Position numbers and translations under genes: made by a program. 64,000 bases of DNA from Paraphysomonas bandaiensis. Taxonomy: Eukaryota > Protista > Chrysophyceae. The stretch is taken from contig CBFFRP010000378.1 of the NCBI GenBank assembly GCA_965644295.1, positions 186,001-250,000 of the forward strand. The letters run 5' to 3'. Below are positions 11,229 through 56,600 of the stretch, one piece after another. The notes beneath the pieces are model-generated. The model did no database searches, was not told the DNA's origin, and saw only the letters and a program-made list of their open reading frames with translations. Position 1 is the stretch's first letter, and each line of letters starts with the position of its first letter.

Positions 11229-11839
11229 CACTTTAGTACACTGTTTGTCTGTATGTTGTATATTACATGTTATTAATCGCTTTTAGCGTTCAGGGCTACG
11301 AATTCACGGCATAATCATTAAATACTAAATACATATATATAAAATATAAATATATAATATGAAGTGGGCCGCACGAACATAGGATCAATACAGTTCTAAT
11401 TAGAATGAAAAAGATATAGAATCTAGTGACGTAAAATTAATTTACAGTCTGCAATTGATCCTTTCTTCATTACTAATACTTTAGCCTAGTACTGTGAATT
11501 GTACTGCTGTTTTTTACTGTCTGTTCTACTGTAAAGTGTTGGAATACGTATGGTTCTCTAAGATAGTACTGTAGAATACGTTAAATACAATGTGAAAAAC
11601 AGTAATACGTAGTCAATAGTCAAAGGTGCTATATAGCTATAACTGTGAAACTGAAGTATTATATCATGACGATTCAAGATACGGAAGTTGAGCAGTGGTT
11701 GACATGAACGAAATAATTTATCATGTTGTTGACATGTGTTACATGACAACACACACAATTGTGTATACAATCATAATAAAGTAATCTATCTAGTTTGACT
11801 AACTTAAACTTCTCTTACAACGATCTTAATCATCTGAAA

Positions 11840-13195
11840 ATGGTCATTAGTCAATATGGTAGCGAATGCGGAGGAGAGAAGGAGGATAGAGCTGATGTTC
11901 CATGGTTCGACGAGAGCAACGTTGAACAATGGATCGAAGACTTTGAGACGTTCCTTATGAGAAAGGAGCAGAGTGAGGTGGCTCTAGAAAGGCCACCAGA
12001 GGAAGAGGATTTCGGAATTCAACCCCTGAATAGTCTTGAGACCAAGTCCTACAAAGAAGCGGTGGACAAGTATTGGAAGGCGAATGCAATTGCCTACTCA
12101 TACTGCAGAGAGGCGGTGAAGCGATCTCCGAAGGCGCTGCAGAAGTTTCATCTGAAGCACAAGGAGTTCAAGGCAGCTGAAGGAAGAGTTAATAAGTTCA
12201 GCGCCAGAGAGATGGTTAGCACTCTTAAATCGTGTTTTGAAGGGGGAACACAAAACAAGATTAGTGCTCTGCTTGCTCAGTTTGGATCATTCGAGATGAA
12301 GCCAGGGGAGACCGCGAAAGAGTATGTACTGCGTTTTGAGCTGCTTCTTCGTGAACTTCAGGCGCATAACCAAACGGTAACGGAAGAATCAAAAATTAGT
12401 AGGCTGAAGGAGGGAATTATCAGTGATGAATATGACGGTTTGAATTATGCCCTGTATTTAATGCCCGATGATGTACCATATGAATTGCTATCCAAACGTA
12501 TCGAACAGTTCGACGACACCAAGTATGGGAGGAAAATCATAGAGAAGAAGCGCAAGAGCACGGAGGAGCTGAATCATATTGAAAAGCCTCGAAAGAAAGA
12601 GAGAGTATCTACAAAGAGGAAGTGCACTTATTGCTCGAAGAAAGGTATAATACACAATCATAATACAGAACAATGTAGGAAGAAAAAGGGGGAAACGAAG
12701 GGACAAAGACCGGGCAGTAAGGAATATACAGGATGCAGAGTATGCAAATCCAAAAACCATCGCGCGAACGAATGTCCCCGAAATTCGACTGGAAAGACCA
12801 AGAAACCCCAGAAATCTGGGAAGGTTTTCACATTCGAGAATATCCGCAGAGGAGGAACCGAGTCTGACTCGGAGTCCGAAGCGAATATGCTTTATGACTG
12901 CGCTGTTGATATATATGATAAAAGTGACACATGTTGTATGATTGGTACTGCTGAACACTATACATACATAGATACATGCTGTTCATCATCAATGTTCTTG
13001 ATGAATGATGTGACCATGCTTGACACTCATATGAATACATCAAAGGTGATAAACGGATCTAAGAAGGGATCAGAGATTCATATCACAAGTGTGGGTTCCC
13101 GTGGAGCATGGAGAGACATAGAAATTTCAGATCAGATCAATCGATGCCTGTGCTCCGGACGTAAGCTGAACGAAATGGGCTATCGATTGATCTGA
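11840..13195 (+). CDS. Copia Gag (two CCHC-type zinc knuckles) plus aspartic-protease region, truncated by the fold-back
   Basis: FEMKPGETAKEYVLRFELLLRELQ (Copia gag-like), CTYC...HNTEQC, CRVCKSKNHRANEC, YIDTCCS (variant of the protease D-S/T-G motif), LCSGRKLNEMGY. ATG lies inside the LTR. Confidence 0.8.
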   Translation: MVISQYGSECGGEKEDRADVPWFDESNVEQWIEDFETFLMRKEQSEVALERPPEEEDFGIQPLNSLETKSYKEAVDKYWKANAIAYSYCREAVKRSPKALQKFHLKHKEFKAAEGRVNKFSAREMVSTLKSCFEGGTQNKISALLAQFGSFEMKPGETAKEYVLRFELLLRELQAHNQTVTEESKISRLKEGIISDEYDGLNYALYLMPDDVPYELLSKRIEQFDDTKYGRKIIEKKRKSTEELNHIEKPRKKERVSTKRKCTYCSKKGIIHNHNTEQCRKKKGETKGQRPGSKEYTGCRVCKSKNHRANECPRNSTGKTKKPQKSGKVFTFENIRRGGTESDSESEANMLYDCAVDIYDKSDTCCMIGTAEHYTYIDTCCSSSMFLMNDVTMLDTHMNTSKVINGSKKGSEIHITSVGSRGAWRDIEISDQINRCLCSGRKLNEMGYRLI

Positions 13196-13267
13196 TCTGA
13201 AATTTCTATGTCTCTCCATGCTCCACGGGAACCCACACTTGTGATATGAATCTCTGATCCCTTCTTA
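13060..13267. repeat. 86-bp perfect inverted repeat (13060-13145 / 13182-13267), 36-nt loop
   Basis: 13182-13267 is the exact reverse complement of 13060-13145. Confidence 0.95.
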
Positions 13268-13576
13268 CATGACAACACACACAATTGTGTATACAATCAT
13301 AATAAAGTAATCTATCTAGTTTGACTAACTTAAACTTCTCTTACAACGATCTTAATCATCTGAAAATGGTCATTAGTCAATATAAAGAAACTGTTACTCG
13401 CACGTTCACAACAGGTTGAGTCTACGAGATGCCCGTAATTACTTTTACACTTTAAATCTTCAACAATAGTTATTGTCTGTATTGCTAAGAAAAGGTAAGG
13501 CAGTGCAAATTCTTGAAACAATGAATAACACCCAGCACCCCAATGAAATATAGGAAATATTCCAAAACTAGGCAAA

Positions 13577-14706
13577 CTAGTTCTCCTTCTTCTGTTGCTG
13601 CTTCGCAAGCTTTTCTCTGTATCGGCGGCGGTGATCCTGATATAGTTACCCATATTAGTTGAATCTACAACAACGTAAACGTAACGAACCTCTACTCGTT
13701 TAAGAGCATTTGTAGCAGAAAAGGGGTTAGCCAGGGAGAAAAATTGCAAGACGGTGTGGAACCAGTATCCATTCACTTGCCATAAGTACTTCTTGCCTAA
13801 CTGAGCAAAAGTGCCTTTCACCAAAGCAATAGGCATAGGGGCAAACAATGTTCCTTTTTCCTTGCGATACTTGTTGGAGACAACATATAAAGGCATTACA
13901 ACGAGTATGTCGATTCCAGTACTAAGATACTCCATGTGCATTGATCGGGAGAACTGAGTCATGAATGCCCTGCAACAAGACAACAAAACATAAGACAGAT
14001 AAAACAGCATCTACATAAATATGAAATCTCACTTTGTCGCAGAGTAAATACTGATATAAGGCGATGGTAGGTTGCCGGAACCAGACGACACGTTCACAAT
14101 GGCACCAATGCCCTTCGGCTCCATGTATCGCAGAACAGTGCGGCTCATAAATATAGTGGAGTCGATGTTGCAATTAACCATATCAGAGCATTCTTTATCT
14201 GTAAGCTCTTGCAGTTTCTGAGGATATTGGTTTGCAATTCCAACATTATTAATTAGTAAGCCCAGACCACCCTCTTTGTCCATCTTTCCGCACTCTTCAT
14301 CTAATTTCTTGTAAAATTTCTCTCTTGCCGGGCCCATATCTGTGAAATCATATGCAATGTATCGAACATCAGTCTTATACATCTCTTTAATTTCAGTCGC
14401 CTGTTCTTTCAATTTATCCTCTGAGCGTGATATGAGCATGACTGAAACACCTCTCTTGGCAAGATAGTCCGCATATTCTTTCCCTATTCCAGAAGTTGAT
14501 CCTATATAAAATATCTTCATATAACTACAACTGTATTACTATCTCTTTCATATACCTGTAACTATAGCCCATTTTCCATATTTTAGTGGGTGTTTAGCAG
14601 GTTTAATGAATCTCCTGTAGATCCCTAAACACAGTCTCCATAACAAGACTGCGATAGTAAGAACACCAATATAATGAGCACACTGTGATAGAATACATGA
14701 TGACAT
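13577..14706 (-). CDS. KCR1: Very-long-chain 3-oxoacyl-CoA reductase (17beta-HSD12/KCR-like SDR), 4 exons
   Basis: N-terminal TM, KYGKWAIVTG|STSGIG Rossmann motif, LINNVG, NVSSGS, catalytic YSATK. The last spliced exon DHRRRYREKLAKQQQKKEN* ends in a KKxx ER-retrieval signal. Confidence 0.9.
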
Positions 14707-15559
14707 GTTTATTTTATGAATTAAATAATTAATTGTATCAATATATTGATATGTGTGTAGATGATTATGTATATATGAATCCTTAGGAGGTCACAGCATG
14801 TTAATTACGTGTACCTCGACTGCTGTATGTATATATATATGCATATACTAGTTAATGTACTTTTACCTATACAAAAAATAGTTCCATTTCATAGCCATTC
14901 CATACATTCCATCAGTGGTGTATGTAGTGGTGTCTGTATACAGTATACTGTATATACAGAGTGTAGTATGGAGATATTTCACAGATAAAACATCCAGTTT
15001 TTAGTAAAAATTAGAGTTTTATTTACAGTGTCCCAAATTTTTAACTATATGGGTACTCTGCTATGGTCTTGAGGTCGTGTAGAAACCCAGCAAATCTATA
15101 GAAACAGCCGTGTATAGCAGTATATAGCGTGCGTGTAGATACATCATACCACACATGCCATGTAGAGGATATTTACATACCAATCCACAGCACATGCTTA
15201 CATGCCAGTAATATACGTACACCAATCTCTCTCGTGCATAAAGGCTCCCCTCTCACATCACACAAGTCTCCTATCTATCTACTGACAATTATACATACGA
15301 AAATACAGCTATTTATATATAGAATACAGTTGCTAGTGGTATTAACAGTGTGATATACGCATAGATCACTGCACTGAACGATTGTCATTAAACATCACTG
15401 ATTGGATAACTCGAATTGAAGTGATCAGATTGAAGTGATCTGATTGGACGACAGATAGTGAAGTGAGTTCTGTGGTGTATATATACATATATAATGATAT
15501 CATATGACACATATAGGCATATAGGCATATAGAGCCCTCTATTCATACATAACAATCAC

Positions 15560-18434
15560 ATGAAAAGACCTTTAAAACCTCCCAAACCTCTTCCGAAACC
15601 ATCTTCCACACCATCCCCTCTGGAGACATCTTCATCACCACCTCAGACGGCTGCAGAACATCCATCTCCTCTACTAAACACGCCTGTATCATCCATAGAG
15701 TCTCCATCACCATTAAACTATGATAAACGATCATATTCTAGTAACCCTCCATCTCCATCGAAACGAATCCAGTTGAATGATGAAACTGACAGTCAGAGGA
15801 CACAGCCTGATAGGCTGCAGCCTCTAGATAGCTCTACACAGACCTCTACAATAGATTCCAATACATACACTACACATACTGATCGTATAGAAGAGAATAG
15901 TATCACAGACAATTCTCAATCTTCTCGTAAGACAAAATTTCTTTCACCAGAACATTGGCAGAAACCGACCCGTCCTCCTGTTGGCACTTCGTCACGCCCT
16001 TCTTATAACTCCTATAAGTATGAGCTCTCTCTGTCCGCTGATCCTCAGGGTGATGATGCTAGGGAAGATAGCGGAGGACGGAACCCCAGTCCTGCCCTTG
16101 GTGGCATTCATGGGGTTGATACTGATTCACTCCGCCTCCACATGTATCATAAGATTCATTATGGCGATGAATGGATGTTTATGACCGTTCTGATGCATGC
16201 TGTGCAGTTTTCAATTTTGATTACAATAGGCTATGCAGCACTTAACACTGTTGCATTTACGGTTCTGCTCTTTCTAGTTCTGCTTGTTATTTTATTATTG
16301 GGTCTTTCTCGATACTTCACTGTAAAACTTCCTCGGAGTCTTGATTGGTCGTACAAGACTATCCGTACCCCTGATCAAGAAACTGACATCGTGTCCGACA
16401 GTGTTATCTACTTGCTATCTGCCGCCGCTATCCTTGAGGGCGGGGCTTATGCTTTGTATCCTACGGCGTCAGCGGGGTATGATGAAGGAGTTATAAACCA
16501 GACTGGGTTTAGGTTTGTGATTGAGTTTTTTGTCTTCTTGTCATTGATATCTCCTCGTATAATTTCAGATCCTATGAAACACTATCTCAAACGCTCAGCT
16601 TTGCCTCCATCGTATTATTTGGCTTCCATAGAATATTAAGACCTTCCAACAGGCTTGACCCTCTCCGTACTGTATTCGAGGTATGTCGTGGTGTCGTAAA
16701 AATATTATTGTTACTGTTGTGTAGACATGTAATTGTGCATATTTTTAGTTAGAGATCGTGTCCATATGCTGGGATGCCCTCGATGGATCGTCTCTCTACG
16801 AGTTGATCAGTGCAAGTGTTATATCGCCATCGTTTGACACAAGCGCTCGGTTTCTCATGTGTTTTTGGTATCTATCTATTGGCCTACGTCTGGCGATGAT
16901 GTACTGTGCTCATTTAACGCCCACCACATACATATACCGCCACCTACTTTCCCCCGCATTGTCTTGGTCACCTGAGCCCACTGTGGACAGGACATTGTCC
17001 AGCATTTACTTCAGAGCATTTATCACCCTGATGATGTCATTTCCTCAGTTTTTTGCTGCCGGGCTCCGTATATCGCTGTGGAACAGAGGAGAATTGAGCT
17101 CTCTACAGCAAGAAATGATGGCCAAGAATATCCTTTTCTTGATACCTGCAGGAAGTGCTATTTTCACGCGCATGATGGTTAAGGGCCGGTACTGGAACAC
17201 AAGACAGCTATTGGTCGGAACAATACCATATCTGAATATCAAACTCAACATCATAAAACCATCAAGACAGTTTCAGATAGAAGTTCTACGCTACACTTTT
17301 GTCGTGACGTATTTGATTACTGGAGCTATGTTTTCATCGTTGCTGACCCATGTCACTGAAAGCTCAACTTTGTGGGTAAATAACGTGGCATCAGATGTCA
17401 TTTTATGTGCCATATTCTTACTACTCTGTCGAGCCGTGCATAAGCCTAAGGTCAGCAGTCTAAAGCCTGAACAAGTTAATCTAAGCATGACATAAAACAG
17501 GTTTGGATATTATTTCCACTCAAGTTGGCACTGGTGCTTGGAATAGTCATGTTCCTAAATTTGTATGTTGCTCGAATTCCAGCGATTTATAGGTAAACGA
17601 TTTATAGTTAGCACTGACGTTGCAGTTTCTTATATGAGTGATTAGGAATGTAAACGACATGGAGGAAGATGGGGAGACTTGGAGTTATAACAACGCATTG
17701 CTTATTGTACTTATTTCTATTGTTCCGATTTCCACGTACGCCTTGTTTTGGGCAGTATGTAACATGGTGTTCCACGCCGAGTTCACAGCTTGTCCAGAGA
17801 AGTAAGTCATTTGTTATGTGTATCTTATTTGTAATATATCGCAGTTACAATGCTGTTCATGATCCCGCGATTACTTTGGTGTCTTCTGCGACAATGCTGG
17901 AAGGTGCTTTAGATATAATATCCTGTGCTTCGCTTTTATCGCTGGCACAGATGGAAAATGTATGTCTCTGTTGTGAGAAGTGTAGGTCTCACCTCTTTTT
18001 TGTAGCTCCCAGATTATATGGATGGCGCTGTAATTTTCTTTGCCTTCATGGAAATAGTCAATGCATGCCAGTGTTTTGTCCTGCAGGTGCTGTTATCAGC
18101 GGGTTATGACGACACTCCAGCTCATTTAGTTCGATGGCGTGCCAATTTGCGACTGGGAAGAGGGGTTATTGATTTGGGAACATTCGCTCTTCGGCTTGCT
18201 CTTTGGATACAATTCAACGCTGTTACTAGTGTGTTTTTAGTCAAAAATTTGTATAATATTTTGCACACTATCAGTTTAGTGGAGAGAGGAAAAGGCGTAG
18301 AAAATTATCGCAAAGATGCTCTCTTTATGCAATACGTGCGACCAAAAGACTGGTATGGAATGAATCAAGACGAATGGAGAGAGGCTACAAGGGAAAGTCT
18401 ACCGGAGCAAGCGCAGTCGGGCCGAGCAGTGTAA
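15560..18434 (+). CDS. Multi-exon multipass membrane protein with a Pro/Ser-rich N-terminus and two TMEM121/CECR6-like repeats
   Basis: ORFs 15560, 16758, 17669 and 18018 are separated by short GT-AG introns. Many TM helices. Duplicated motifs ALDGSSLYEL...LRISLW...MMAKNILF and ALDIISCASLL...LRLALW...FLVKNLYN. Family call is by recall. Confidence 0.6.
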
Positions 18435-21879: not shown

Positions 21880-23676
21880 CTAAATTTTTCGCATACGAGT
21901 GACTGGGAGATTTTGTTCACGGTCAATGACGAAATCTTGAAGAATTTTACACTGGGATGAATCCAAATAGTGGAGGATGCAAAATTCAAGCACTTGAGTT
22001 TCTGTGGAGATGCCGTTATCGTGTAATTCAAACACAACTGTATTTACGCTGCCACTTGGCTGTATATGATCGATACTCAAGCTAAATAATACTGGAGTAT
22101 CATCAAAGCACTTATACTGATCTTCTGTAGCGGCAGCATTGAAAGTGCTATTGAAATCTGGTCGTCTGGGTAGAGTCAGTGCCATATTGAAAATATCTAA
22201 CATAATATTCTGCCATGTCTCGCCAGTATGTGCACTCATCATCAAGCTACTGTGTGCTTTCGCAGCTTCCATAGTAATTCGAGAAGCTACTAGCATTTGC
22301 AATGCGCATTCAAACTCATGTTTGGTTCTATACGTTAGTACCGGATCGGGAAAAGAATCATACGAATCGTTGAATGCTGGTAATCCAAAGTCAGCACTCT
22401 CCGCACAGAGAATCATATCCTCCTCTAAATCCCACGGACAAAACGAGATAGCTACACTGTCAAGCAAAGTGGATTCAACAAGCGACGTTATTGAACTGAA
22501 TGGGAAGGAGTCAATGTGTATATCTGCAGCAATGTGGTACATTGCAGACGTGGCACCATCAACTGAATCCAAAAAAGTTACTTGAGACATGTTCACTCGT
22601 TTATCCTCGCATCGCTGTCTCCACACATCAGGAACGCCAATTGCAACTAAGCGAACAAACTTTGAATGCAACAAGGCTGGAATAATCATATCGATGTAGT
22701 CTGTCTGCTCCCCATACTTGTAAGGTGCAGCCATAGTTAGCAACACTGTATCGTGATCGCTGAAGCCTAGTACACGCCGACAATCTAATTTATCACGTAT
22801 TGGGGACATGAAATTACTCGCTGGTAGTGGCATTTTTAGATTTCTTTCGTTAGCAATTCCGCGCCGTGTTGACAGCCGTCGCGCAGCCTCACGATAGACA
22901 AGTCGCACATCCAGTACCGTGCTGCCGACCCACGGCAAGTGATCAGAGTGATCAAATAACGCCACAGGAGGGCCACTGTATCCAGCACCAAACGCCAATA
23001 AATGATCTTCGCAGAAATTATGAGTATGAAGAATAACTAAATCGAACTCTATAGCGAAATCTCTTAGCTGCTGAGCGCAGGCTAATCCATGAATGCTGCA
23101 TTGAGTGACACTTCCTCGCAAATTCGACAGACTGCTGTACCTAATAATATCTGGTACATCATGATAACTGTTTGTTATAAATACCGACTGTTCCAACTGA
23201 GGGAGAAATTCAAAGAAACTGATGAGTACTCGAGTATGTCCTCCGCTGGGATAAAATTCAGTTCCAACATGTAATATTTTTCGTACAGTTGGTGTTTGTG
23301 GTGCAATATATTCCCGTTTTTCTAAATGATTATCTGCAATGTGCCAGAGATAACCTTCCAGTTCTGGGCTCCAGAGATTATTAAATCCCCATACTTTTGT
23401 TGCACTGTGCTGTATTAGATGAATTGCCCGATCCAAATGACCATGCCGATAGCAATCCATTGACCTCCGTACAAAGGGATTTATCCCATCTTGTTGTTCA
23501 GGATATAAATTTGCAAATGTATCGTATATCCACTCTTTGTGAGGTTGGAATAAGTTGCTATCTGTTGTATGTCTGCTGTTCCTCTCAAACATACACCACA
23601 ATCCATGTGACTCATTGATGCCATTGACAATACCACATGCAAGAAAAAGAGTAATCAATAGTATGGGATACATCAT
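21880..23676 (-). CDS. GT-B fold (GT4-like) glycosyltransferase with signal peptide, intronless, bacterial-like core
   Basis: ILHVGTEFYPSGGHTR, DLVILHTH, PPVALFDHSDHLPWVG, RRVLGF...VLLTMAAPYKY, AADIHIDSFPFSSITSLVES. Hydrophobic N-terminus. Confidence 0.75.
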   Translation of the reverse strand: MMYPILLITLFLACGIVNGINESHGLWCMFERNSRHTTDSNLFQPHKEWIYDTFANLYPEQQDGINPFVRRSMDCYRHGHLDRAIHLIQHSATKVWGFNNLWSPELEGYLWHIADNHLEKREYIAPQTPTVRKILHVGTEFYPSGGHTRVLISFFEFLPQLEQSVFITNSYHDVPDIIRYSSLSNLRGSVTQCSIHGLACAQQLRDFAIEFDLVILHTHNFCEDHLLAFGAGYSGPPVALFDHSDHLPWVGSTVLDVRLVYREAARRLSTRRGIANERNLKMPLPASNFMSPIRDKLDCRRVLGFSDHDTVLLTMAAPYKYGEQTDYIDMIIPALLHSKFVRLVAIGVPDVWRQRCEDKRVNMSQVTFLDSVDGATSAMYHIAADIHIDSFPFSSITSLVESTLLDSVAISFCPWDLEEDMILCAESADFGLPAFNDSYDSFPDPVLTYRTKHEFECALQMLVASRITMEAAKAHSSLMMSAHTGETWQNIMLDIFNMALTLPRRPDFNSTFNAAATEDQYKCFDDTPVLFSLSIDHIQPSGSVNTVVFELHDNGISTETQVLEFCILHYLDSSQCKILQDFVIDREQNLPVTRMRKI

Positions 23677-26030: not shown

Positions 26031-26437
26031 AATTGACGCGAACAAAAATAAGTTCTTTGTGCACTAGTAGCAACAAATGATAACAGTTGAGACTGAAAAC
26101 AGCTTTTAATTATACTTACGAGCTTATAAGATATTTTGATTTATACTAAAATTCCTACTTGGAATGTCTATTGCTTATAGTGCACCCTATAGCTTCTTCA
26201 TCAAGTCACGAGAAATACATGCTCTCATTGAATTTACCCTTGTAGATAAGCACGCTAAGGTGTCCACGGTGCCATTTATCAAGAAAACACAGAATTCGTG
26301 AAAATAATTATAGTAGTTTACACCTAGTCCACGGCATAGTGGGCTCAAATGAAATGAAAACCACTACATCATTAAGTGGATAAAGTTGTGTGAAAAAAAA
26401 GAGATACTCAGGAAATATACTTCTCTAGATATTTATA

Positions 26438-29400
26438 TCACGAGTGAAGACTGGAATACAATTCTGGACGCCTCTCTTGAACGAGACCGAAAGCACGCCT
26501 CTGGACGCGGTAGTATTCCAGGTCCAAATCAGCGAAAATAATGGCGCTCGATGAATCGCTTGCTTGCTGCACAATTTCCCCAGTACCGTCGGTAATAAAA
26601 CTGGAACCTGTGTACAGTTCAATTAACTAAGAAAATACATGTCCATGTGAAACTACCATAGAACGACACCGTAGATTCTTTGTGCACTTCGGTGCCAATT
26701 CTGTTGGATACAACAACTGGAATCAAATTGCATGCTGCGTGGCCGGTCACTGTCCTCTGCCACCGGCCTACGGAATCATGATGATGTTCGAGGGAGCCCG
26801 CTCCAATTGAAGTCGGAAACACTGTGGGTACAATAAGAAAAGTTCTAAACATTACATGACAACATTCTTACACAAAATCTCCGCCCCTTTTAAAGCCATT
26901 GCTCTGGCGGCTTCAGGAAACCACTACGGTAGTGCTTATATTGAGAAACTATCAATAATAACTTGCATACCTGATCTTGACAGATGCCAACCCCAAGTGA
27001 GCCGAATTTAGTCCGAAATACTCTAAAGCCAGTGTCTCCGGGGCTGGCATAACTAGATATATCCAATATTAGAAAAAAATTTATTTGGGGAACTACTTAT
27101 GGAAACCCACAATTTCTCACTGTATCCTGGGCTCTTTATAATATGAGACTTCCTGTAACAGCCAAGCACCTTTCCATCGGCATCAATGACCTGCAATAAT
27201 CCGTGGGTTAAGCACAACTGATCCCGCACTAATGTAACGACTAACCGCAACAGAGTTAAAGTACGACTTTTTCTTTTTCTCGAAGAAACTTAGGGGAATC
27301 ACCTGTGGAGCAATGATGGTAAGCTGGCCCTGGATGCGCGTGATAAGAACTTACCACACCGAGTTCTTTCGCAAGAGATGAAAAACGCAATAGCAGAGGA
27401 TTGGAATTGGGACTGTACGCTGAGGAAAGTGAAAAATTCGTGGGGTCTTCAACCTGCAAAGCAATAATTTAACAAAAAGCTATTAACACTTTCCCATGTA
27501 TGACGACATGTCGTGCCCAGTACACTTCATCACACACCTGGAAGAAATACGAAAACTGAAACAGCTCTGGAAGCAGCACAATGTTGGAGCCCTTCTTCGC
27601 AGCTTCTCTAACAAGACGTTCGGCTGAGTCAATATTGCATTGAGAGTCCTTACTATAATGTTCACCTATTCTTAATACTAGAATGAGAAATAAAAACCAA
27701 ATTACCTGATTGACATCTGAGCCGCTGCAACTCTAACGTTTCGACAACGATCAGACTGCAGATTTTTCTCAGAGATAGCCTCATCTTCGCCCTTCGCTAC
27801 GGCTTTCTGCTGGCGCTTGGAAATACGCTGCTCATGTATTTCCAGAGCTGTCTCTCTCCTCACCGTACACACCTTCACAGCCTCTTCATCAGGTGAAGTA
27901 CATATGGGAACCTTCAAGGGCCTGTCCGTCTCCTGCTGCCCCGTGAAGTGAATTCGAATCTTACGAGCTCCACCACGAAACTTTACACCACATGAAATGC
28001 ACTTGTATTGGCTAGGTCCACGAGGATTGTGGCGAACCACTTCAACGAATTGCTCTTCCGGGATACCTCCCGTGCCTTCTTTCTTGCTCTCTTCCATGAC
28101 GGGATGCTCTTCATTTGATGCAGCAGGTACAGCCTCATCTTCGCCCTTCGCTACGGCTTTCTGCTGGCGCTTGGAAATACGCTGCTCATGTATTTCCAGA
28201 GCTGTCTCTCTCCTCACCGTACACACCTTCACAGCCTCTTCATCAGGTGAAGTACATATGGGAACCTTCAAGGGCCTGTCCGTCTCCTGCTGCCCCGTGA
28301 AGTGAATTCGAATCTTACGAGCTCCACCACGAAACTTTACACCACATGAAATGCACTTGTATTGGCTAGGTCCACGAGGATTGTGGCGAACCACTTCAAC
28401 GAATTGCTCTTCCGGGATACCTCCCGTGCCTTCTTTCTTGCTCTCTTCCATGACGGGATGCTCTTCATTTGATGCAGCAGGTACAGCCTCATCTTCGCCC
28501 TTCGCTACGGCTTTCTGCTGGCGCTTGGAAATACGCTGCTCATGTATTTCCAGAGCTGTCTCTCTCCTCGCCGTACACACCTTCACAGCCTCTTCATCAG
28601 GTGAAGTACATATGGGAACCTTCAAGGGCCTGTCCGTCTCCTGCTGCCCCGTGAAGTGAATTCGAATCTTACGAGCTCCACCACGAAACTTTACACCACA
28701 TGAAATGCACTTGTATTGGCTAGGTCCACGAGGATTGTGGCGAACCACTTCAACGAATTGCTCTTCCGGGATACCTCCCGTGCCTTCTTTCTTGCTCTCT
28801 TCCATGACGGGATGCTCTTCATTTGATGCAGCAGGTACAGCCTCATCTTCGCCCTTCGCTACGGCTTTCTGCTGGCGCTTGGAAATACGCTGCTCATGTA
28901 TTTCCAGAGCTGTCTCTCTCCTCGCCGTACACACCTTCACAGCCTCTTCATCAGGTGAAGTACATATGGGAACCTTCAAGGGCCTGTCCGTCTCCTGCTG
29001 CCCCGTGAAGTGAATTCGAATCTTACGAGCTCCACCACGAAACTTTACACCACATGAAATGCACTTGTATTGGCTAGGTCCACGAGGATTGTGGCGAACC
29101 ACTTCAACGAATTGCTCTTCCGGGATACCTCCCGTGCCTTCTTTCTTGCTCTCTTCCATGACGGGATGCTCTTCATTTGATGCAGCAGGTACAGCCTCAT
29201 CTTCGCCCTTCGCTACGGCTTTCTGCTGGCGCTTGGAAATACGCTGCTCATGTATTTCCAGAGCTGTCTCTCTCCTCACCGTACACACCTTCACAGCCTC
29301 TTCATCAGGTGAAGTACATATGGGAACCTTCAAGGGCCTGTCCGTCTCCTGCTGCCCCGTGAAGTGAATTCGTATCTTACGAGCTCCACCACGAAACTTT

Positions 29401-29999
29401 ACACCACATGAAATGCACTTGTATTGGCTAGGTCCACGAGGATTGTGGCGAACCACCTCAACGAATTGCTCTTCCGGGATACCTCCCGTGCCTTCTTTCT
29501 TGCTCTCTTCCATGACGGGATGCTCTTCATTTGATGCAGCAGGTACGGCCTCATCTTCGCCCTTCGCTACGGCTTTCTGCTGGCGCTTGGAAATACGCTG
29601 CTCATGTATTTCCAGAGCTGTCTCTCTCCTCGCCGTACACACCTTCACAGCCTCTTCATCAGGTGAAGTACATATGGGAACCTTCAAAGGCTTGTCTGTC
29701 TCCTGCTGCCCCGTGAAATGAATTCGAATCTTACGAGCTCCACCATGAAACTTTATACCACATGATAGACACTTATATTGATGAGGTCCTCTGCGATTAC
29801 TATGAATGATCTCTACAAATTGCTCCTCTGGTATGTGATATGAAAGGTTTGATTGATGAGTTTGATGAAGTGAAGGAGAAATATGACCATTAGGGATCAT
29901 GAGTGGTGTGTGATAGTGATATGTGTGGGTTAAGTGGTCTGATGAGAGATGGCTGTGTGTTGATATCTGGCTGTGGATATCATAACCATAATACGACAC
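26438..29999 (-). CDS. aguB: Fusion gene: six tandem BED-type zinc-finger modules plus N-carbamoylputrescine amidohydrolase (nitrilase superfamily), 9 exons
   Basis: Exon 1 (29999-27706) ends VRVAAAQMSI. Intron 27653-27705 gives in-frame SKDSQCNIDSAERLVREAAKKGSNIVLLPELF. Later exons give VIPLSFFE, YFNS, IDADG..LGCYRKSHI, GYSEKF, PGDTGFRVF.TKFG.LGVGICQDQWFPEAARAMALKGAEIL.FPTSIG, WQRTVTGHAACN.IPVVVSNRIGTE, FYGSSFI, RRPELY and a TGA at 26438-26440. Confidence 0.85.
27778..29835 (-). repeat. Coding tandem repeat, 354-bp (118-aa) unit, six zinc-finger-bearing copies
   Basis: Shadow ORFs recur at exactly 354-bp spacing (27997, 28351, 28705, 29059, 29413). Units differ by only a few SNPs; the N-terminal-most copy is more diverged. 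Confidence 0.97.
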
Positions 30000-30105
30000 A
30001 TTCCTATAGAAAAAAAGAACAAATACAGTGTGAGGTGTGTACTAGTGGACTATGTATACCCACATACCACATACAAGTGCCCAGTTGTGGACTTGTATGG
30101 ATATG

Positions 30106-30564: not shown

Positions 30565-32910
30565 ATGTATGTGTGTCATATCTGTATATATATCGTCTGT
30601 GTCTTATATACAGTCATAAGTAAACCAACTCATCAATTATCAATATTTCAATTTAAAAATACTCGTGCTAGAGATACTCTCCAAACATGGGCTAATAACC
30701 TCATCCAGACTGATGGTACAGTATCACATAGTGAAGCTGTATTGAGAGAACAACTTGTGGTTGATAAGATATCTAAAGGCGAGTGGCCTGAGGAGGTGTA
30801 TCATGAATATCAGCTATTTGCTGCCTCTTATGGCAATGTAGACTCTGCCCGACTCATGCTAGAGTATGGCATAGGGTATCGTCTACAGGAAGAGACAAGT
30901 CACGGTGTGAGTGTTAATGAGGTGGTCTCTAGTGCCTTCAGTTGCTCGATACCACAGCTACATCATGCTCTAGACTCTGGGAAGAGCCCGAATGTGCCTC
31001 TGTCCGATGGTACCACAGCCTTGATGGCGGCTTCGTATTCAGGTTGTACCGAAGCTGTTGATGTGTTGTTGCAAACGGATGCTGAAGTGGATGCAATTGG
31101 TCGCCATGGTGCCACAGCTTTTATGATTGCTTCTGCAATGGGGCATACAGATATAGTTCGTAAACTTTCAGCAGGTGGTGCTGATGTCACCATAAAACAC
31201 AGATTTGCCAATACATCTCCCCTTCATATGGCGTCTGAAATGGAACAAGTGGAAGCGATCAAACTACTTTGTGAATTAGGCTATAATGGACGACATGTTA
31301 CTGCTTTGGGGGGTAATGCTCTCCATACTGCTGCCCAAGTTGGGGCTGCGAATTCAGTCCTTGCATTGGTATCTTCTCCGTGCTCAGTACCCGTGGACGG
31401 TCTCATGAATGGAGATACCACCCCTCTTTACTTAGCTTCGCAGCATGGACATAGCAATACTGTGAAAGCACTGTTACAGTGTGGAGCCAATGTATCCTTT
31501 TCAATGCCAGTATCACCCTACAAGGGAAGTCGCGAACTGAGCACGAGCAAGTCCGATAGTGCCACCAACTTTGCGTTTGTGCCTAATAGTGAAGCTGGCA
31601 ATGGTGCCAGTGCTCTGCATGCAGCAGCAGAGAATGGTCATTCGAATATTGTGAGACTTCTTATCGAACAGGGTGGAGCTGATGTCGATATGATGGGCGG
31701 AATCGGAGTGACAGCACTGCATCTGGCTGCACAGTATGACCGCAAACCTGTCGCGAAAGAGCTTCTCTCTATGGGTGCAGCAGTTGATGTACATGCAACA
31801 ACTGACGGGTCTACTGCCCTTTACTATGCGGTAGGGTATGGATCTCTTGGCATGGTGCGAATTCTTCTTCGTGCAGGTGCTAGTCCCCTTCGACAGAGAG
31901 CAATCCCTAATATAAAAGGACAGGATCGTCATGAAAGCGCTGGAGGTATTCCAGTACGAGGGACACCTCTCATGTATGCTGTGCTTCTTGGACGGTATGA
32001 AATAATGCAAAGTATTCTTAACTATGAACGCAAAATTGGCTCAAGTGAGGCGGTTGTCAATTATGTGGACACGGATGGTACCACTTTGGTGCATGCAGCT
32101 GCTGGGATGACCGGTCCTTCCAGGCAAGACGATGTGTATGATGATATCCTCTCCTTATTGATATCTTTTGGGTGCGATTCGAGACGAATTCAGTCTAGTA
32201 GTGGTAAAACTGCACTGCACTTCGCAGCGCTCGGTGGAAGTACTCGTGCTGTTAAGTTGCTACTCCGTTCCGTTGATGATGCTACACTGCAGACGTGGGT
32301 TAACATAAAGGACGATGCAGGGTATACAGCGTTGCATTACGCCGTTTCCACAGTGGTTGCGGGTGATGTGGAGGAAAACTCTGCTGCAGTGGAATGCATT
32401 AGTGAGATTATTCGTGCTGGTGGAAATGTCGATGCACGCGTCGAGCAGATCGGTGGGTTGCAAGGAGCCACTGCTTTATACTTGGCTGCGAGTGGCGTGA
32501 ACGCCCATTTCACGACAGTTGCTGTCAGAGCTCTACTCAAGGCAGGAGCTGACCCTGACGTGACATTAGAAGACAGCGCTAAAGGATTTACTCCGCTCTT
32601 GGCAGCTATAGATAGAAGTAATTCAGCTGTCGTAGAAGCCTTACTGTTTGATGGACACGCAGATCCAAATAAGGGTGTCGCGCAGAGTACATCGTTGACT
32701 CAATCACCTATATTGTTTGCTGTCGTTAAAGGATCAACCCCCGTTGTTGATTTCCTACTACAATCTGGGGCTACATGTGATATTAGGATCATGCATCCTT
32801 CTTCCGACAATCCATTGAGCTTGATAGGTTTAGCTAGAATACGTAGAGACTATGATATGTTGCAATTACTTATGGCTAGCAGTAATTGCACCGAAGATGT
32901 GGAAGTTTAA
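30565..32910 (+). CDS. Ankyrin-repeat protein (roughly 15 repeats); 5' end uncertain
   Basis: Repeated G.TALH.AA..G....V.LLL..GA consensus, e.g. GTTALMAAS, TPLYLASQHGH, SALHAAAENGH, GKTALHFAA. Confidence 0.92.
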   Translation: MYVCHICIYIVCVLYTVISKPTHQLSIFQFKNTRARDTLQTWANNLIQTDGTVSHSEAVLREQLVVDKISKGEWPEEVYHEYQLFAASYGNVDSARLMLEYGIGYRLQEETSHGVSVNEVVSSAFSCSIPQLHHALDSGKSPNVPLSDGTTALMAASYSGCTEAVDVLLQTDAEVDAIGRHGATAFMIASAMGHTDIVRKLSAGGADVTIKHRFANTSPLHMASEMEQVEAIKLLCELGYNGRHVTALGGNALHTAAQVGAANSVLALVSSPCSVPVDGLMNGDTTPLYLASQHGHSNTVKALLQCGANVSFSMPVSPYKGSRELSTSKSDSATNFAFVPNSEAGNGASALHAAAENGHSNIVRLLIEQGGADVDMMGGIGVTALHLAAQYDRKPVAKELLSMGAAVDVHATTDGSTALYYAVGYGSLGMVRILLRAGASPLRQRAIPNIKGQDRHESAGGIPVRGTPLMYAVLLGRYEIMQSILNYERKIGSSEAVVNYVDTDGTTLVHAAAGMTGPSRQDDVYDDILSLLISFGCDSRRIQSSSGKTALHFAALGGSTRAVKLLLRSVDDATLQTWVNIKDDAGYTALHYAVSTVVAGDVEENSAAVECISEIIRAGGNVDARVEQIGGLQGATALYLAASGVNAHFTTVAVRALLKAGADPDVTLEDSAKGFTPLLAAIDRSNSAVVEALLFDGHADPNKGVAQSTSLTQSPILFAVVKGSTPVVDFLLQSGATCDIRIMHPSSDNPLSLIGLARIRRDYDMLQLLMASSNCTEDVEV

Positions 32911-50605: not shown

Positions 50606-53600
50606 TTAAGAACCTTCTTCAGATACATCACTCAAGCTATCCATTTCTCTAAGCAGTGCTGACATTCGCTTCGTTTTCACCATTGAGAAAGTTCGTTTGG
50701 CGGAATTGGAATCATTAAAATCATCCGGTTTATGAATGTCCTCCTCTGCTCCAGCAGATACGATAGTGCCACGGACATGGGGATGGAACTTTCTTTCAAC
50801 ATTAGTTCCGAGGGACAAGGAGTCATCTACAGCCGACCAACTTGATTGTCTCGAGGCGAGGAGTCGATTACCTGCCTCCTGTACATCCAATGCCCCTCTT
50901 GCGGTCGACGCCAATGCGCGATTTTGCTTTGATTTCTTCGTCGTGTCCCCGACCAATACCGGATCATCAAACTCTAAAATACTACTGCCTTCAGATATAA
51001 ATTCCTGGGGTAGTTCTGCTTCGTTCCTTGTGATAATACTACGATATGACGATGGCTGATTAGCCCTACGCGCTGGCCTCTCTCGTCGCAAGGATACATT
51101 TCTACTGTTCTTTGAGTCAATAGATGATACAGACATATCACTGTCTAACACATCACTGTTGTCAAATAAATCTGACACTTGCCGCTCTGGTTGCTTCACT
51201 CGTGCTATACTTCCACTTGAAGCAGAGAACTTAGTGCTGTACATTGTAGGAGATTTGTGAGACACCTTTCCGGTACTCATCGGGGTGAGTTTACTGGCAC
51301 GGTATGCGCTGACATTATCTTCTCTGGTGGTAGTGGTATTGAGCTCCTTCAGCACATTGTCTAGCAAATTCAGCCTTTCATTGAACTCTACTTCTGTCTC
51401 TCTTCTTTGTTCAGGTGTCCTTGCAGTGTGTGTGCTGTATGGCTTGCTCATATGCTTGCTCTGGGACTGGCGACCTGTCTGCATGCCACTACGGGATAGA
51501 ATAGGACTCGAGGTGACGTCAAACAAATCTTGTGTTTTCATAGGAGTAAAACTTCTCGGGCTTTCTACTCCAGTCTCATCTTGAGATGCACCTGGCGTCA
51601 ACGGAGGCAGTGTGATCGAGTTACGTGAACCTTCTCCTTTAATATTAAGTATTTCATCCATCATAGCTATTGTAGTTCTTAACTTTGACGGTTTAGGGCT
51701 TCTAGAGGGCAAGTTCTCTGCAGCTGCAACTTTTCCTGTAGCATTATTCCTATATAAAAGCTTAGATGTTCGATACGAATCGGCAGGAACGACAACTGAT
51801 GAATCTCTAGGGGCCATAAGTTTATCAGAACCAGGCGCGTTAGTGTCTTTAGCTGCAGCAGTCATGTGCAAAACGGTATCTACCACGCTAAACATACTTT
51901 CTGTTCGTCCTTCTTTGATTGTAGGTTGACGTGGTTTCTGCTTATCCCTTTTACTCGAAGGTTCAGATTTTAGTAATTGACTTGACCTATGACTTGAGAC
52001 TGAATACTTGTCAGCTTTAGCTTCGTCGTCATCCATTGCGCTCGACAGGGCAAGCGACGTGCTCCCATCAGCAATAGTCGAAGTTTCATGTATAATATTC
52101 GACATATCAGGTGCACTTTTTACATCGTCGTCGGAAGAGGAGTAGTAGGATGCATCATCAGCATCTCCTTCCATTAATCTCTGCTGAATGTGAGAGTGAA
52201 TCTTGTTTCTTATGTTCCTCACAGACTTCAAGCGGTTAAAATATATACAGAGTACAACTGATAGTATCCCTGCACCTAGTCCTACCAGAACGATAAAACC
52301 GTGGGCAAGGTACAGTGCAACAATGACAAGTAAGCATATTCCTACCAACGACGAAACCATAAGCTCCAGTACGATCTCGCCCAGAATAGGAACATGAAAT
52401 AGATATGCTACAAACGCAACCATCCACGGATCACGGATACTTTCTGGGTCGTAATCAGGGCCTAGCATGATCCCATCGTTGTTATCAACTGTCAAAGCAG
52501 AAATCGCATGGTCTGGATAGGCGTGAATATGCACACTGCGACGAGGGATATTCAAGCATAGTGCTAAGAAAAGCTCGCCTAAACGATTGTCAAAAAACTT
52601 TGCAGCCACCCTGGCAGATGAATACAACATTAAACTCCACTTAAATATCTCGGGATTCATTTTAAATCGATTTAGGTCTACTATACACCGTACCAGCATG
52701 GCCTTTATCTTTTCGACTTTTTCGTGTATTAGCAAAGGGACTGCAAAATCTGAAACTATCACAACCAATCCCCGTAAAATGACGACTTCCAAAACGACCC
52801 ATGCGAATAAGGAGTACAGCCATAATATTTGTAACCGTTCTACCCTCGTGTAAGCAAAAAAGAAAATAAACACAACCGCCAACCACATATATAGAAGTAC
52901 AGTAGATACGGCCAGAAGTTTAACTCCGATGTACTTTGGTTCGTATGTGGTGGCAATATGCTCATCTCTGCGGTATTTCCACCGGAATATGGTGCTCTCC
53001 GCATCAGAGAGAAGATCTTCCACAAGGAGCTGGAGTATTCTGAAATCATCTAGTGGGTTGTTAGTATACTTTAATTTCCGCACAATTTCGCTCTGCTCAC
53101 GTGATATACTCGTATGAACTCTAATTAATTCTTGCATCAATATATCATCGTTTGTGCGACCAGGAAAGCACCTATAAGTGTTACAATCACTGTCGCTTTC
53201 AGTGCTGCTTTCGTAAGTATGTTCACTCACATCCACCCCACTGTTGATCCCCCACATCGATGCAAACTGGGCTTTGCTTCTGGAAGATGGCATCACATCT
53301 ATGTGTGCTGAGGCCTTTTCCTTCAATAGAATTAAGTCGCTCTCAGCCGCACTGTATATGTATTCATATTCCTTGCTTATTTCTAATTTGTCAAAAATAC
53401 GCACCCATGGATTCTCATTCCTCCTAGCCCGTATGATCCAACAGATAAAAGACGTCGGTAAAAAGTGCAGAATCCAATTGAAACCACGCGCAGCCGTGCT
53501 TTCCTTTAGCGATGGGACCATGACATAATACCGCAACACATATCGTACAAGATTGGTTACTGGTACACCAATTACAGCAGCGACACATGCGCCAACAGCA

Positions 53601-56600
53601 ATACTCCATACTGCTGCTGATGGAGACCGCAGGTCACATGATTGCTCATTGTCATCCCATTCGCACCTCCGACCCAGAAAGTTTCCCATCGATACTCCGA
53701 GTATATAGTGCCGATGGCACTTCGCTTCGGTTTCGTAATGAATGCATGTCTCATTATCAACATGTAGAGGGTCAAATACAATGCACACAAGCCCTTGAAT
53801 AAAAAACATGGTGATAGCATCACATGTCAAGAACATGCTATCCGAAAGTAAATTACGCAACCTACCGAACTCTGGGAATATAGGGGATAGAGCGAGGAAA
53901 AGAAAATGAATTCCTCTGTGGTACTGAAGTAATTCAATGGCAATTTTACGTAACCATGAAAAACTTTGTACGCCATGAAATATCTGTGGTAATGCTTTTT
54001 CCACAACCTGAATGGCTTTACCTTCATGACCAATACCGTCGGCCATTATTTCTAACCCCTTCGTCTTTGATGCTTCCTCAACAAATACTTTATGACCATC
54101 TATAACAGCCAATTCTTCCAATTGATATTCAACACAATATCCAATGACAACGGCTAACCCACATGCTATGACCAGCGTCGTAAGAGCGTATAGAGTTACT
54201 GTACCAGCAACAAAATTTGAATTATCAAACGCTGTAAAGTCCGATATGATAGCTGCATCCCCGAAAGAATAAGCCTTGTTGATAGCGGAAGCAAACTGTA
54301 GTGTCTGTACATCACCCTCAGCTAGCCTTCGCCGTTCGTTTCCAATCAAAACATTACCCAGTAGTGCATCTTTAAGTGGACAAAAACATGTAGTGCTGAG
54401 AGCATCAAAAGAAACCAACGTACAAGCACCATGGACAGCGTCAGTTTCATTCCATGGGAAACATTGAGGGGTGACCTCAAGACTTCGTGATGGGCAAAGC
54501 GTAGTAAATATACCAGCAGTCTTATTGCAGTAAACGGAAAATTCAAGCCCAGATAGGGGACAATTCAGAGTGATATACCCTTGGTCGTCAGCATGGCAGG
54601 TGGTTGTCACAGAGTATCGCCAGCTGTCACTGACTGATGTGTTGTCAAATTTTTGGGCTTCGTAATTATGCACAGTTACGAGTACAGAAGCGTTGGTTGT
54701 GTTTGCGATGAAATCACTAGATGTCAAAAAACTTGCTCTCACAATATCAGACAAAAATGCAGATCGGCCATCTGACTTCAGTACCTGATAAGACTTCAAG
54801 GAAGCAACCCATCCCAGTACTGTGCTGTCGTAAAACATATCATCTAAATTCGACAGAATAATGTCATCAGACGTAACACCAAGAGCAGATTCATAGGACG
54901 TCAGTGGGGTGGCAACACTAACATTTGCTTCTCCTGCACCATCAAGAGAAATAACTGATACGCGCAAGAACGATTCAATGTCGGTGGTTGGATTTTCTCC
55001 CACCGACATTTCAGATAAAATAGCAGAACATAAGTCATCTACAACGCCAGCTAAATAACCTCTATCGACACTCGAAACCAGAATTTCCATTGCGGTAGCC
55101 AAGGAGAAAAACAATTTGGCCAGCACCTGTGTTTGAATAGACAGCCCAGAGCTGGCTGAAATGATCGATTCAACAGCTGTAACTACATCACTCGCCGCAG
55201 TCAGGGATAATTCACTACTTTGTTGACACAATGCTGCAAGTGAGTCGATATTACTGGCAATTGTTTCCGCGCTGTTGTCTTGAGTTGATAGCAGCACTAG
55301 GAGGGCAGATATTGACTGCTCCCGCAGAGAAATTTTTTCTTCGAATTCCGATGTGCTGTACGAACAAGCTGGGCCAGCATAACCACTGTAGCACACACAC
55401 TGCGCGGAACATGACAGCGACCCAACAAAGCAGTTGTTGATAGTAGCTCCTTTATCTGTAAAATACGTACACGACCCATGACCCGAACAAGTTTTGTCTG
55501 GACACTCCTTGGAATCTCGAACACACACGCCTCCACCAGATGATGGGTCCAATTCGCAGTGTTCCCATACCCCACATCCGGGATGGCATGATACACTGCT
55601 ACTTGAATCCAACCGTCTCAATCTTATGGAGGTCTGAAACAAGTCTTCCGCCACACATTCTGAGTTATCACTTCCATCTTCACCCACATATCCCTCCAGG
55701 CAAACTCCACATGTGTGAGGATATTCAAAGCACTCACCACGATTTAAGGCAGTACAATTCGGGGCAGTAGAACAATTTACTTCATTTAGAGTTCCTGATA
55801 TCACAGACAAATCCCCTTCGCTCACAGAACCAGAGTCAAGAAGACCACTAACTGCGTCAAAAATATCAGTGTCATTTGACTGTTGCATTACAATGAGAGA
55901 CCGAAAAGATGATGCATTGGCATTTAAAGAATCGTAAACTGTGACTGATGTTATGACTTCGAAACTGGGAGCACGCCCTTTCGACATAATGGTGTTCACT
56001 TCCGTTGTCTCAGATAACGCTTGAAGCACTAAAGCATCCCCTTTCGTAGAAATGTATCCGAATTCATAGGCAATTGGTATATCATCGTCGTTCCAATTAT
56101 ACGCGCTGAAGGCAAATACCGTCAACAATTCCTCACCTTCAGTGGGTGAGACTTCTAGACTCCCATCAGAAGGTGGGCCGTTGGTAATAATTTCAATTCT
56201 CTCGTATGAACTAGAAATTGCACTACTAGTAGGTTCGCAACTCAGTGTGAACACATATGTCACCCCACCATCCAATGCATTCGGTTTCAAAACAAGGTTC
56301 GTTGAGTACCGCATTGACACACTCGGATTATTTACAGATAACGTCCGTGACACTGCAGTCGTGGACTTCGATGGCAAGTTAAAATTCGGATTCACTGCAA
56401 ATCCTTTTTCGTTGACCGCCCATGTCATTATACATGTGTGGGCAGTACGAACACTTGCACTTATTGTGATTTTTTTGGATGGGTTGAACTTACTACCGCG
56501 GATAACCGTATCAAATGCAATACTCGGAGTTGTGGGGTCTGCAACCTCAACAAGTACAGATGTTGAGCTACTTCTTTCGTCCGATGATTCTACAAACACA

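Follow-up and report, generated by a model that had tools for sequence, protein, structure and literature searches.

Six tandem BED-like fingers fused in frame to an AguB-type nitrilase with an altered substrate channel in Paraphysomonas bandaiensis

Why should a small-molecule hydrolase carry an array of transposase-type zinc fingers? The question is raised by a minus-strand gene on contig C378 of Paraphysomonas bandaiensis, within the window analysed here (the whole 64-kb stretch of DNA, to whose positions all coordinates refer). The gene joins six BED-like CCHC fingers in frame to a nitrilase of the AguB/N-carbamoylputrescine amidohydrolase (CPA) clade. We present evidence that the fusion is transcribed and its repeat kept as protein, and that the enzyme has lost residues associated with CPA specificity. 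The host genome (62.6 Mb) is eukaryotic and intron-rich; sequence near-identical to the window also occurs in runs under three organism labels and in marine metatranscriptomes. The marine occurrence and the small size of the introns agree with a protist.

The finger array lies in a single open frame (27702-30041, minus, stop to stop), where a 354-bp unit is repeated over 27777-29780 in 5.7 copies with 98% matches. Six C-x2-C-x13-H-x15-C fingers start at 29834, 29480, 29126, 28772, 28418 and 28064. Each is followed by a long helix, with an acidic linker in units 1-5 only; the sixth unit ends early after its helix and passes in frame into nitrilase strand beta-1. In units 2-5, the finger plus helix is basic (isoelectric point (pI) 9.5) and the 30-residue linker acidic (pI 4.4), with one methionine each. 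The initial annotation had described six modules of 118 residues: six fingers are indeed encoded, but the array amounts to 5.7 units, the sixth being incomplete. Its description of repeats running directly into the first nitrilase strand was borne out by the shared open frame, with the junction at 27777, as was its account of eight ordinary GT-AG introns completing the nitrilase domain, all of which are spliced in RNA contigs. These introns (minus, first to last base: 27705-27653, 27537-27454, 27354-27303, 27245-27191, 27110-27053, 26970-26924, 26871-26822 and 26656-26608) span 47-84 bases and leave the frame stop-free through to the stop codon at 26440-26438. For introns 2, 5 and 8, other splice sites were considered and discarded, as they disrupted the frame or the motifs. 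Coding had been proposed to begin at 29999, where the codon is GTG; the earliest in-frame ATG, at 29900, would give a product of 1004 residues, and an acceptor-like site at 30004 may mark a further exon upstream, leaving this ATG a candidate start only. No methionine occurs between the last finger and strand beta-1; an internal start would therefore still include at least one finger, and an unfused enzyme cannot be started. The features of the gene, all on the minus strand, are as follows.

29835-30041, minus: histidine-rich leader in frame with the array, containing the ATG at 29900 and the acceptor-like site at 30004; transcript contig L021 begins within it, at 29943.
29481-29834, minus: repeat unit 1 (divergent), with BED-like CCHC finger, long helix and acidic linker; dN/dS (ratio of non-synonymous to synonymous change) 0.18 against unit 3; present in transcript L021.
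28065-29480, minus: repeat units 2-5, nearly identical, 354 bp and 118 residues each; model with predicted local distance difference test score (pLDDT) 92 and template-modelling score (TM) 0.75 to zf-BED_2/DUF659 transposase fingers.
27777-28064, minus: repeat unit 6, with finger, helix and shortened linker; fusion junction at 27777, bridged by transcript contig L021.
27706-27776, minus: short joint and first nitrilase beta strand, sharing the exon of the array; matches the N-terminal end of Medicago CPA (MtCPA) in alignment.
27538-27652, minus: nitrilase exon 2, with the catalytic Glu (MtCPA E48); RNA splice joints, reading frame and alignment.
27355-27453, minus: nitrilase exon 3; RNA splice joints and reading frame.
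27246-27302, minus: nitrilase exon 4; RNA splice joints and reading frame.
27111-27190, minus: nitrilase exon 5, with K121 and E132 kept and P125I, D126K and G127S; RNA splice joints and alignment.
26971-27052, minus: nitrilase exon 6, with nucleophile C158 kept and W159Q; RNA splice joints and alignment.
26872-26923, minus: nitrilase exon 7; RNA splice joints and reading frame.
26657-26821, minus: nitrilase exon 8, with altered specificity loop (A183S, S186A, E187G, P188S); RNA splice joints and alignment.
26438-26607, minus: nitrilase exon 9 to the stop, with swapped C-terminal arm and W277F; RNA splice joints and alignment.
26292-26437, minus: 3' untranslated region, within which the transcript contigs terminate (26292-26330).

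Expression was assessed in contigs from three RNA runs, each belonging to a different study (one recorded as poly(A) RNA, two presumed to be RNA). Searches used genomic exons or the transcript-derived database protein P0001, and exons were joined in scripts for the frame check only. Splice joints for all eight introns were present in contigs of the three RNA runs and absent from the DNA run compared. The spliced contigs stop 30 bases into the last unit, one base under the bridging threshold and at a point where the assembly graph must branch. The RNA also includes a circular contig of the unit with a 354-base joint that goes back on itself; read depth of the unit relative to the unique part (3.9, 5.6 and 4.1 in RNA, 3.9 in DNA) is a rough sign of several copies only. 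A separately assembled Joint Genome Institute (JGI) transcript contig, L021, runs from 29943 through the leader and unit 1 into a scaffold gap and beyond it carries 495 bases of repeat (1.4 units) continuous with the spliced enzyme and its 3' untranslated region. Runs of a second sample label contain 97% of the words of 26300-28200. Of the checks named in the initial annotation, the intron at 27653-27705 is spliced in all three runs, and L021 crosses the junction from repeat into enzyme.

Comparison of units 1 and 3 revealed 18.5 synonymous differences over 80 sites and 13.5 non-synonymous differences over 274 sites, concentrated in the first 50 codons. Given the resulting dN/dS of 0.18 (Fisher p 1e-5), the repeat is, on the evidence of its codons, maintained as protein by purifying selection. 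Over the finger, the protein sequence of unit 1 shows about 87% identity to the other units, and units 2-6 differ at 0-3 bases within the first 255, the pattern expected if unequal exchange in the tandem array had homogenised them. The locus thus displays both a chimeric transcript and a captured domain under purifying selection, by which host-transposase fusions are recognised, and we regard the fused protein as almost certainly real.

What kind of finger has been joined to the enzyme? A single unit did not match the Pfam zf-BED family (PF02892), and a genome-wide PF02892 search found only a separate hAT element at C236. A word-based homolog search with one unit gave no match, and Foldseek, VIA and PDB profile searches with the finger returned nothing specific. 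A Pfam scan of the whole exon yielded summed, repeat-inflated matches to small fingers with no passing stretch, and these were dismissed. By language-model features the finger scored 0.95-0.97 to the zf-BED and zf-BED_2 clusters of the ESM Atlas, and among 1.84 billion proteins a profile search recovered about 70 relatives with the same finger. The C-x2-C...H...C ligand set with its GG core (zf-BED_2, PF26664 type) is present; the four ligands and one glycine are invariant across 47 aligned relatives, 6 of which match PF02892, and one close relative matches PF26664 weakly. Most of the relatives are host proteins that stand alone, resemble regulators and carry one to four fingers. The relatives include host-like two-finger proteins, small single-finger proteins, proteins with the finger followed by DUF659 (the hAT transposase type) and plant-type BED proteins matching PF02892. 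An alignment-based model of the finger reached pLDDT 92 (single-sequence folding only 52) and superposed on predicted BED_2-DUF659-hAT proteins with TM 0.75-0.76 over 77-81 residues.

The fold is very probably BED-like, and sequence and model support a place for the finger among the BED-like CCHC fingers of DUF659-type hAT transposases and domesticated host genes. With the fingers of these transposases and SLEEPER genes it has in common the C-x2-C-x13-H-x15-C ligands, a GG-x-x-x-I-x-x-H core and, in the model, a beta-hairpin/helix/long helix fold (TM 0.75). It differs in scoring nothing on PF02892, in its six near-identical tandem copies and in being only 18-39% identical to its relatives; the fusion also lacks the transposase body and terminal repeats of the DUF659-hAT and SLEEPER proteins. 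Thus the proposal of a hAT-type BED finger holds as kinship by features, fold model and relatives, but not as a match to PF02892. Among the proteins recovered, P0003-P0027 form a eukaryotic family of 200-940 residues in which two tandem fingers of this kind are set in low-complexity stretches and no Pfam domain is matched; it is a candidate for an undescribed family of protist transcription factors.

The array is not itself a mobile element: its DNA is single-copy in the genome, the fusion contains neither DUF659 nor a dimerisation domain, and no convincing terminal inverted repeats were found at the locus. No transposase with this finger was found in the genome, where the finger occurs only once more, in a small, apparently domesticated, single-finger gene on C30; relatives exist in other samples. 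The finger tree mixes transposase and host fingers without separating a transposon donor from a domesticated one, and the enzyme tree gives no sister. The initial annotation had inferred that a transposase-derived finger was captured and amplified; a finger of hAT kinship was indeed fused and amplified, but its immediate donor may have been either a transposon or a domesticated gene. The C30 gene (L018:1162-1899, minus) has two exons, one finger and a C-terminal motif common to P0002, P0016 and P0021, and has the look of a domesticated BED-like regulator, conserved but unannotated. Elsewhere, two metagenome assemblies place the finger-DUF659 transposase P0239 (L042:2600-6871) next to a sulfotransferase gene and in head-to-head orientation to an RNase H-like (RVT_3) gene. 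The hAT element on C236 (L011:1429-2476) is conventional, carries a PF02892 finger, lies in pieces and is unrelated to the array.

Is the other half of the protein still an N-carbamoylputrescine amidase? P0001 matched the CN_hydrolase family (PF00795) with 179.9 bits (cut-off 23.2), as had been expected, and its best match among solved structures was MtCPA (PDB 5H8I; E 3.5e-91). TIGR03381 was the best family by far, aligning over the full profile at 378.2 bits against a cut-off of 410.25 that was set on prokaryotic proteins; family and descent are therefore as the initial annotation had supposed, but the score is below cut-off. With 52-58% identity to plant and bacterial AguB/CPA members, the enzyme domain appears by sequence to descend from this clade. 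It shares with MtCPA the fold and the Glu-Lys-Glu-Cys set (E48, K121, E132 and C158) and also retains Y54, Y130, W162, I184 and the fold core. It differs from the family in the added N-terminal finger array of about 720 residues, in its sub-threshold score and in its long branch (0.85-1.27 changes per site).

The differences concern the substrate channel, described for CPA together with the role of Glu187 in fixing substrate charge and length (PMC4812014). E187G, W159Q, P125I, A183S and W277F, plus D126K, line up along it, the first five at positions conserved in nearly all of 203 homologs (E187 in 202, W159 in 201, P125 and A183 in 203, W277 in 202). Conserved channel positions were altered in 5 of 10 cases and other conserved positions in 15 of 102 (p 0.016). 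In total, the enzyme departs at 20 of 112 conserved columns, whereas 176 of the 203 homologs depart at 0-3, and its departures are otherwise matched only by divergent viral copies. The C-terminal arm is altered too, in W277F and the next conserved residues. On sequence, then, the enzyme is without the CPA specificity features and should not be filed as an N-carbamoylputrescine amidase; a role in local polyamine production, as first suggested, is not supported, given the replacement of Glu187 and four further channel residues and the sub-threshold score. No close ortholog was found in two metagenome scans and one viral scan, which returned only relatives of 40-56% identity, and two probable eukaryotic aguB genes (P0130 and P0157) are canonical and unfused. 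Divergent AguB-like genes occur on viral contigs L140-L145, two of which show channel changes (W159F in L144, E187S in L145).

The pathway around the enzyme was examined in the same genome. The fusion is the sole aguB-type gene: a second, unfused paralog, sought in three ways, was not found; a nitrilase on C363 that was considered for this role belongs to another subfamily (115 bits on TIGR03381). The genome encodes agmatine deiminase (AguA), an agmatinase above cut-off, arginase and several decarboxylases of the ornithine decarboxylase (ODC) family, probably ornithine decarboxylases, and contains no clear SpeA-type arginine decarboxylase. Since agmatinase, arginase and ODC-family genes are present, putrescine need not depend on the fusion gene. 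An incomplete route of this kind, with reliance on ODC instead, is found in many microalgae (PMC6356823). A possible second nitrilase fusion was seen on C17 (L002, a 348-residue frame, minus), where a Nit1-like nitrilase starts within the open frame of a preceding HAD/5'-nucleotidase-like domain; the domains are guessed from sequence.

The reading that we tentatively put forward is of a nucleic-acid-tethered amidase of changed specificity, not a putrescine maker. A BED-like (zf-BED_2 type) finger and helix would have become attached, in frame, at the 5' end of the single aguB gene; tandem duplication would then have raised the number to six and unequal exchange kept units 2-6 uniform, to give a protein of about 1000 residues. 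Alternative putrescine routes may have freed the gene to change. The enzyme half, with its nitrilase catalytic set, is probably still catalytic and most likely cuts a ureido or amide C-N bond. If so, a change of specificity is likewise probable: the charge- and length-setting residue is gone and the channel walls are opened, and loss of the acidic anchor and aromatic walls most likely admits a different, bulkier or non-cationic carbamoyl substrate. The fingers reasonably probably bind nucleic acid, as their basic charge (pI 9.5) and family precedent suggest; multiplied by nitrilase oligomerisation, they would most likely hold the enzyme on DNA or chromatin in the nucleus. A far more specific version, which we consider highly improbable, is a chromatin-tethered decarbamoylase that acts on carbamylated lysine (homocitrulline) and restores lysine. 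Carbamylated lysine has the ureido group and four methylenes of N-carbamoylputrescine, with peptide backbone where Glu187 would hold the amine, and loss of Glu187 and the aromatic wall would admit it. We know of no established enzyme that reverses protein lysine carbamylation.

Several observations weigh against a tethered amidase of changed specificity. Agmatine deiminase has been kept, and its product needs an AguB. The 203 homologs are mostly bacterial, and the channel comparison was post hoc, using a residue list from one paper after the changes had been seen. The H. pylori enzyme CNH has no Glu187 loop yet is thought to bind putrescine via another acid (PMC12961655), although in the fusion enzyme the neighbouring Asp126 is lost as well. 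By itself the kept catalytic set is weak evidence of activity, retention of all four residues having a chance of 0.53 at the background rate of change and 0.06 at the channel rate. The channel changes may have come with the fusion or earlier, either order being compatible with the absence of a close ortholog from the scans. For the fingers, the solved BED domains 2CT5 and 2DJR appeared in the top 50 structural matches at Z 2.6-2.7, which is noise level.

How do other explanations fare? The protein might still be the cell's N-carbamoylputrescine amidase, perhaps with a broader range that includes citrulline, the array being a tolerated passenger or localisation tag. It is the sole aguB in a genome that retains aguA, its best family is TIGR03381 and its catalytic set is intact; moreover, Francisella AguB accepts both N-carbamoylputrescine and citrulline (PMC9251427). 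Set against this are the replacement of E187, P125, A183, W159 and W277, each kept in 201-203 of the 203 homologs, the 20 departures where most homologs have three at most, and the canonical, unfused state of P0130 and P0157, and we consider this explanation unlikely. Equally unlikely, in our estimate, is a decaying or dead enzyme, retained as an oligomeric scaffold or a sensor of some ligand, that makes the six fingers a highly multivalent DNA-binding regulator. CPA octamers form via the C-terminal arm, the branch is long, substrate contacts are lost and the relatives of the finger are mostly regulator-like; but the enzyme retains its fold core and, besides the catalytic four, Y54, Y130 and W162, changes gather in the channel rather than spreading, and the oligomer-building arm is itself among the altered parts.

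An integrated decoy, in which the fingers bind transposon DNA, viral DNA or a parasite effector and so switch the amidase on, as has been proposed for BED-NLRs, seems very unlikely. Plant NLRs have repeatedly acquired BED domains from single-BED and BED-DUF659/hAT proteins (PMC7761493), and recent growth in copy number is compatible with an arms race. Fingers and CN_hydrolase are, however, the only domains in the protein, where no NB-ARC/LRR, immune or death domain was found; the locus is single, its repeat is under purifying selection and homogenised rather than diversified, and the genome is without a transposase that carries this finger. The multivalent decoy put forward in the initial annotation gained no supporting evidence from this single-copy gene. 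Least credible of all is an assembly or gene-model artefact, or an enzyme made without fingers, which is already largely refuted. In its favour, the Logan RNA contigs enter the repeat by only 30 bases, one under the bridging threshold, no single record spans the whole array, and the start codon is unsettled. Against it stand the 495 repeat bases continuous with spliced enzyme in L021, the 97% word content in runs of the second sample label, the lack of a methionine for an unfused start and purifying selection on the repeat.

By descent, as judged from sequence, the fusion is neither a transposon nor a BED-NLR but a member of the nitrilase superfamily and the AguB clade. Like the host-transposase fusions SETMAR, PGBD3-CSB and KRABINER (bioRxiv 10.1101/2020.05.07.082677) and the plant BED-NLRs (PMC7761493), it carries a transposase-type DNA-binding module on a host domain, under selection. 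It differs from these in that the partner is a small-molecule metabolic hydrolase rather than a chromatin, repair or immune domain, and in that the module, amplified in tandem, lies in the exon where the host domain begins; its donor may have been a transposon or a domesticated gene. Chromatin, repair and immune proteins are already known to carry DNA-binding domains captured from transposases; in the present gene a domain of this kind, in six copies, is attached to a small-molecule hydrolase. Francisella citrulline ureidase (Ctu/AguB) is another AguB-family enzyme with a wider range of ureido substrates (PMC9251427, PMC9007349), but it is single-domain and bacterial; the comparison here is at the level of the family.

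Literature searches for BED together with nitrilase found no description, and no close relative with the same fusion was found. The claim that the architecture is undescribed therefore holds for the literature searched, although the ESM Atlas groups 84 Zoopagomycota proteins, each about 729 residues long, in a cluster annotated with CN_hydrolase (100%) and zf-BED (21%), a lead that comes from annotation only (score 0.89). By that database annotation, BED and carbon-nitrogen hydrolase share one chain in another kingdom. As none of the 115 other finger hits has a nitrilase, the fungal pairing is probably an independent fusion, and it hints that tethering of an amidase to DNA arose more than once; were the decarbamoylase version true, the fungal cluster would represent a convergent nuclear amidase. 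The gene described here, so far from one protist lineage only and of predicted function, offers a compact, testable case of fusion accompanied by altered enzyme specificity, with a rebuilt pocket and a kept catalytic set. It also puts to a natural test the view, drawn from structure, that CPA owes its specificity to Glu187.

Other features of the window were noted. An ankyrin-repeat gene (30565-32910, plus) forms a head-to-head pair with the fusion gene, the two being separated by a TATG microsatellite. An intronless frame of 598 residues without a Pfam match (21880-23676, minus) resembles, by impression of its sequence, a glycosyltransferase of bacterial type. At 11795-16640, a gag-like frame of Copia type (weak PF14223), together with several frames that had no match, possibly represents a decayed retroelement. 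At the far end, an open frame of at least 4207 residues (50606-63999, minus), with a Pro/Thr-rich repeat of 12-base units over 4.4 kb followed by a REJ domain, appears to encode a giant surface protein.

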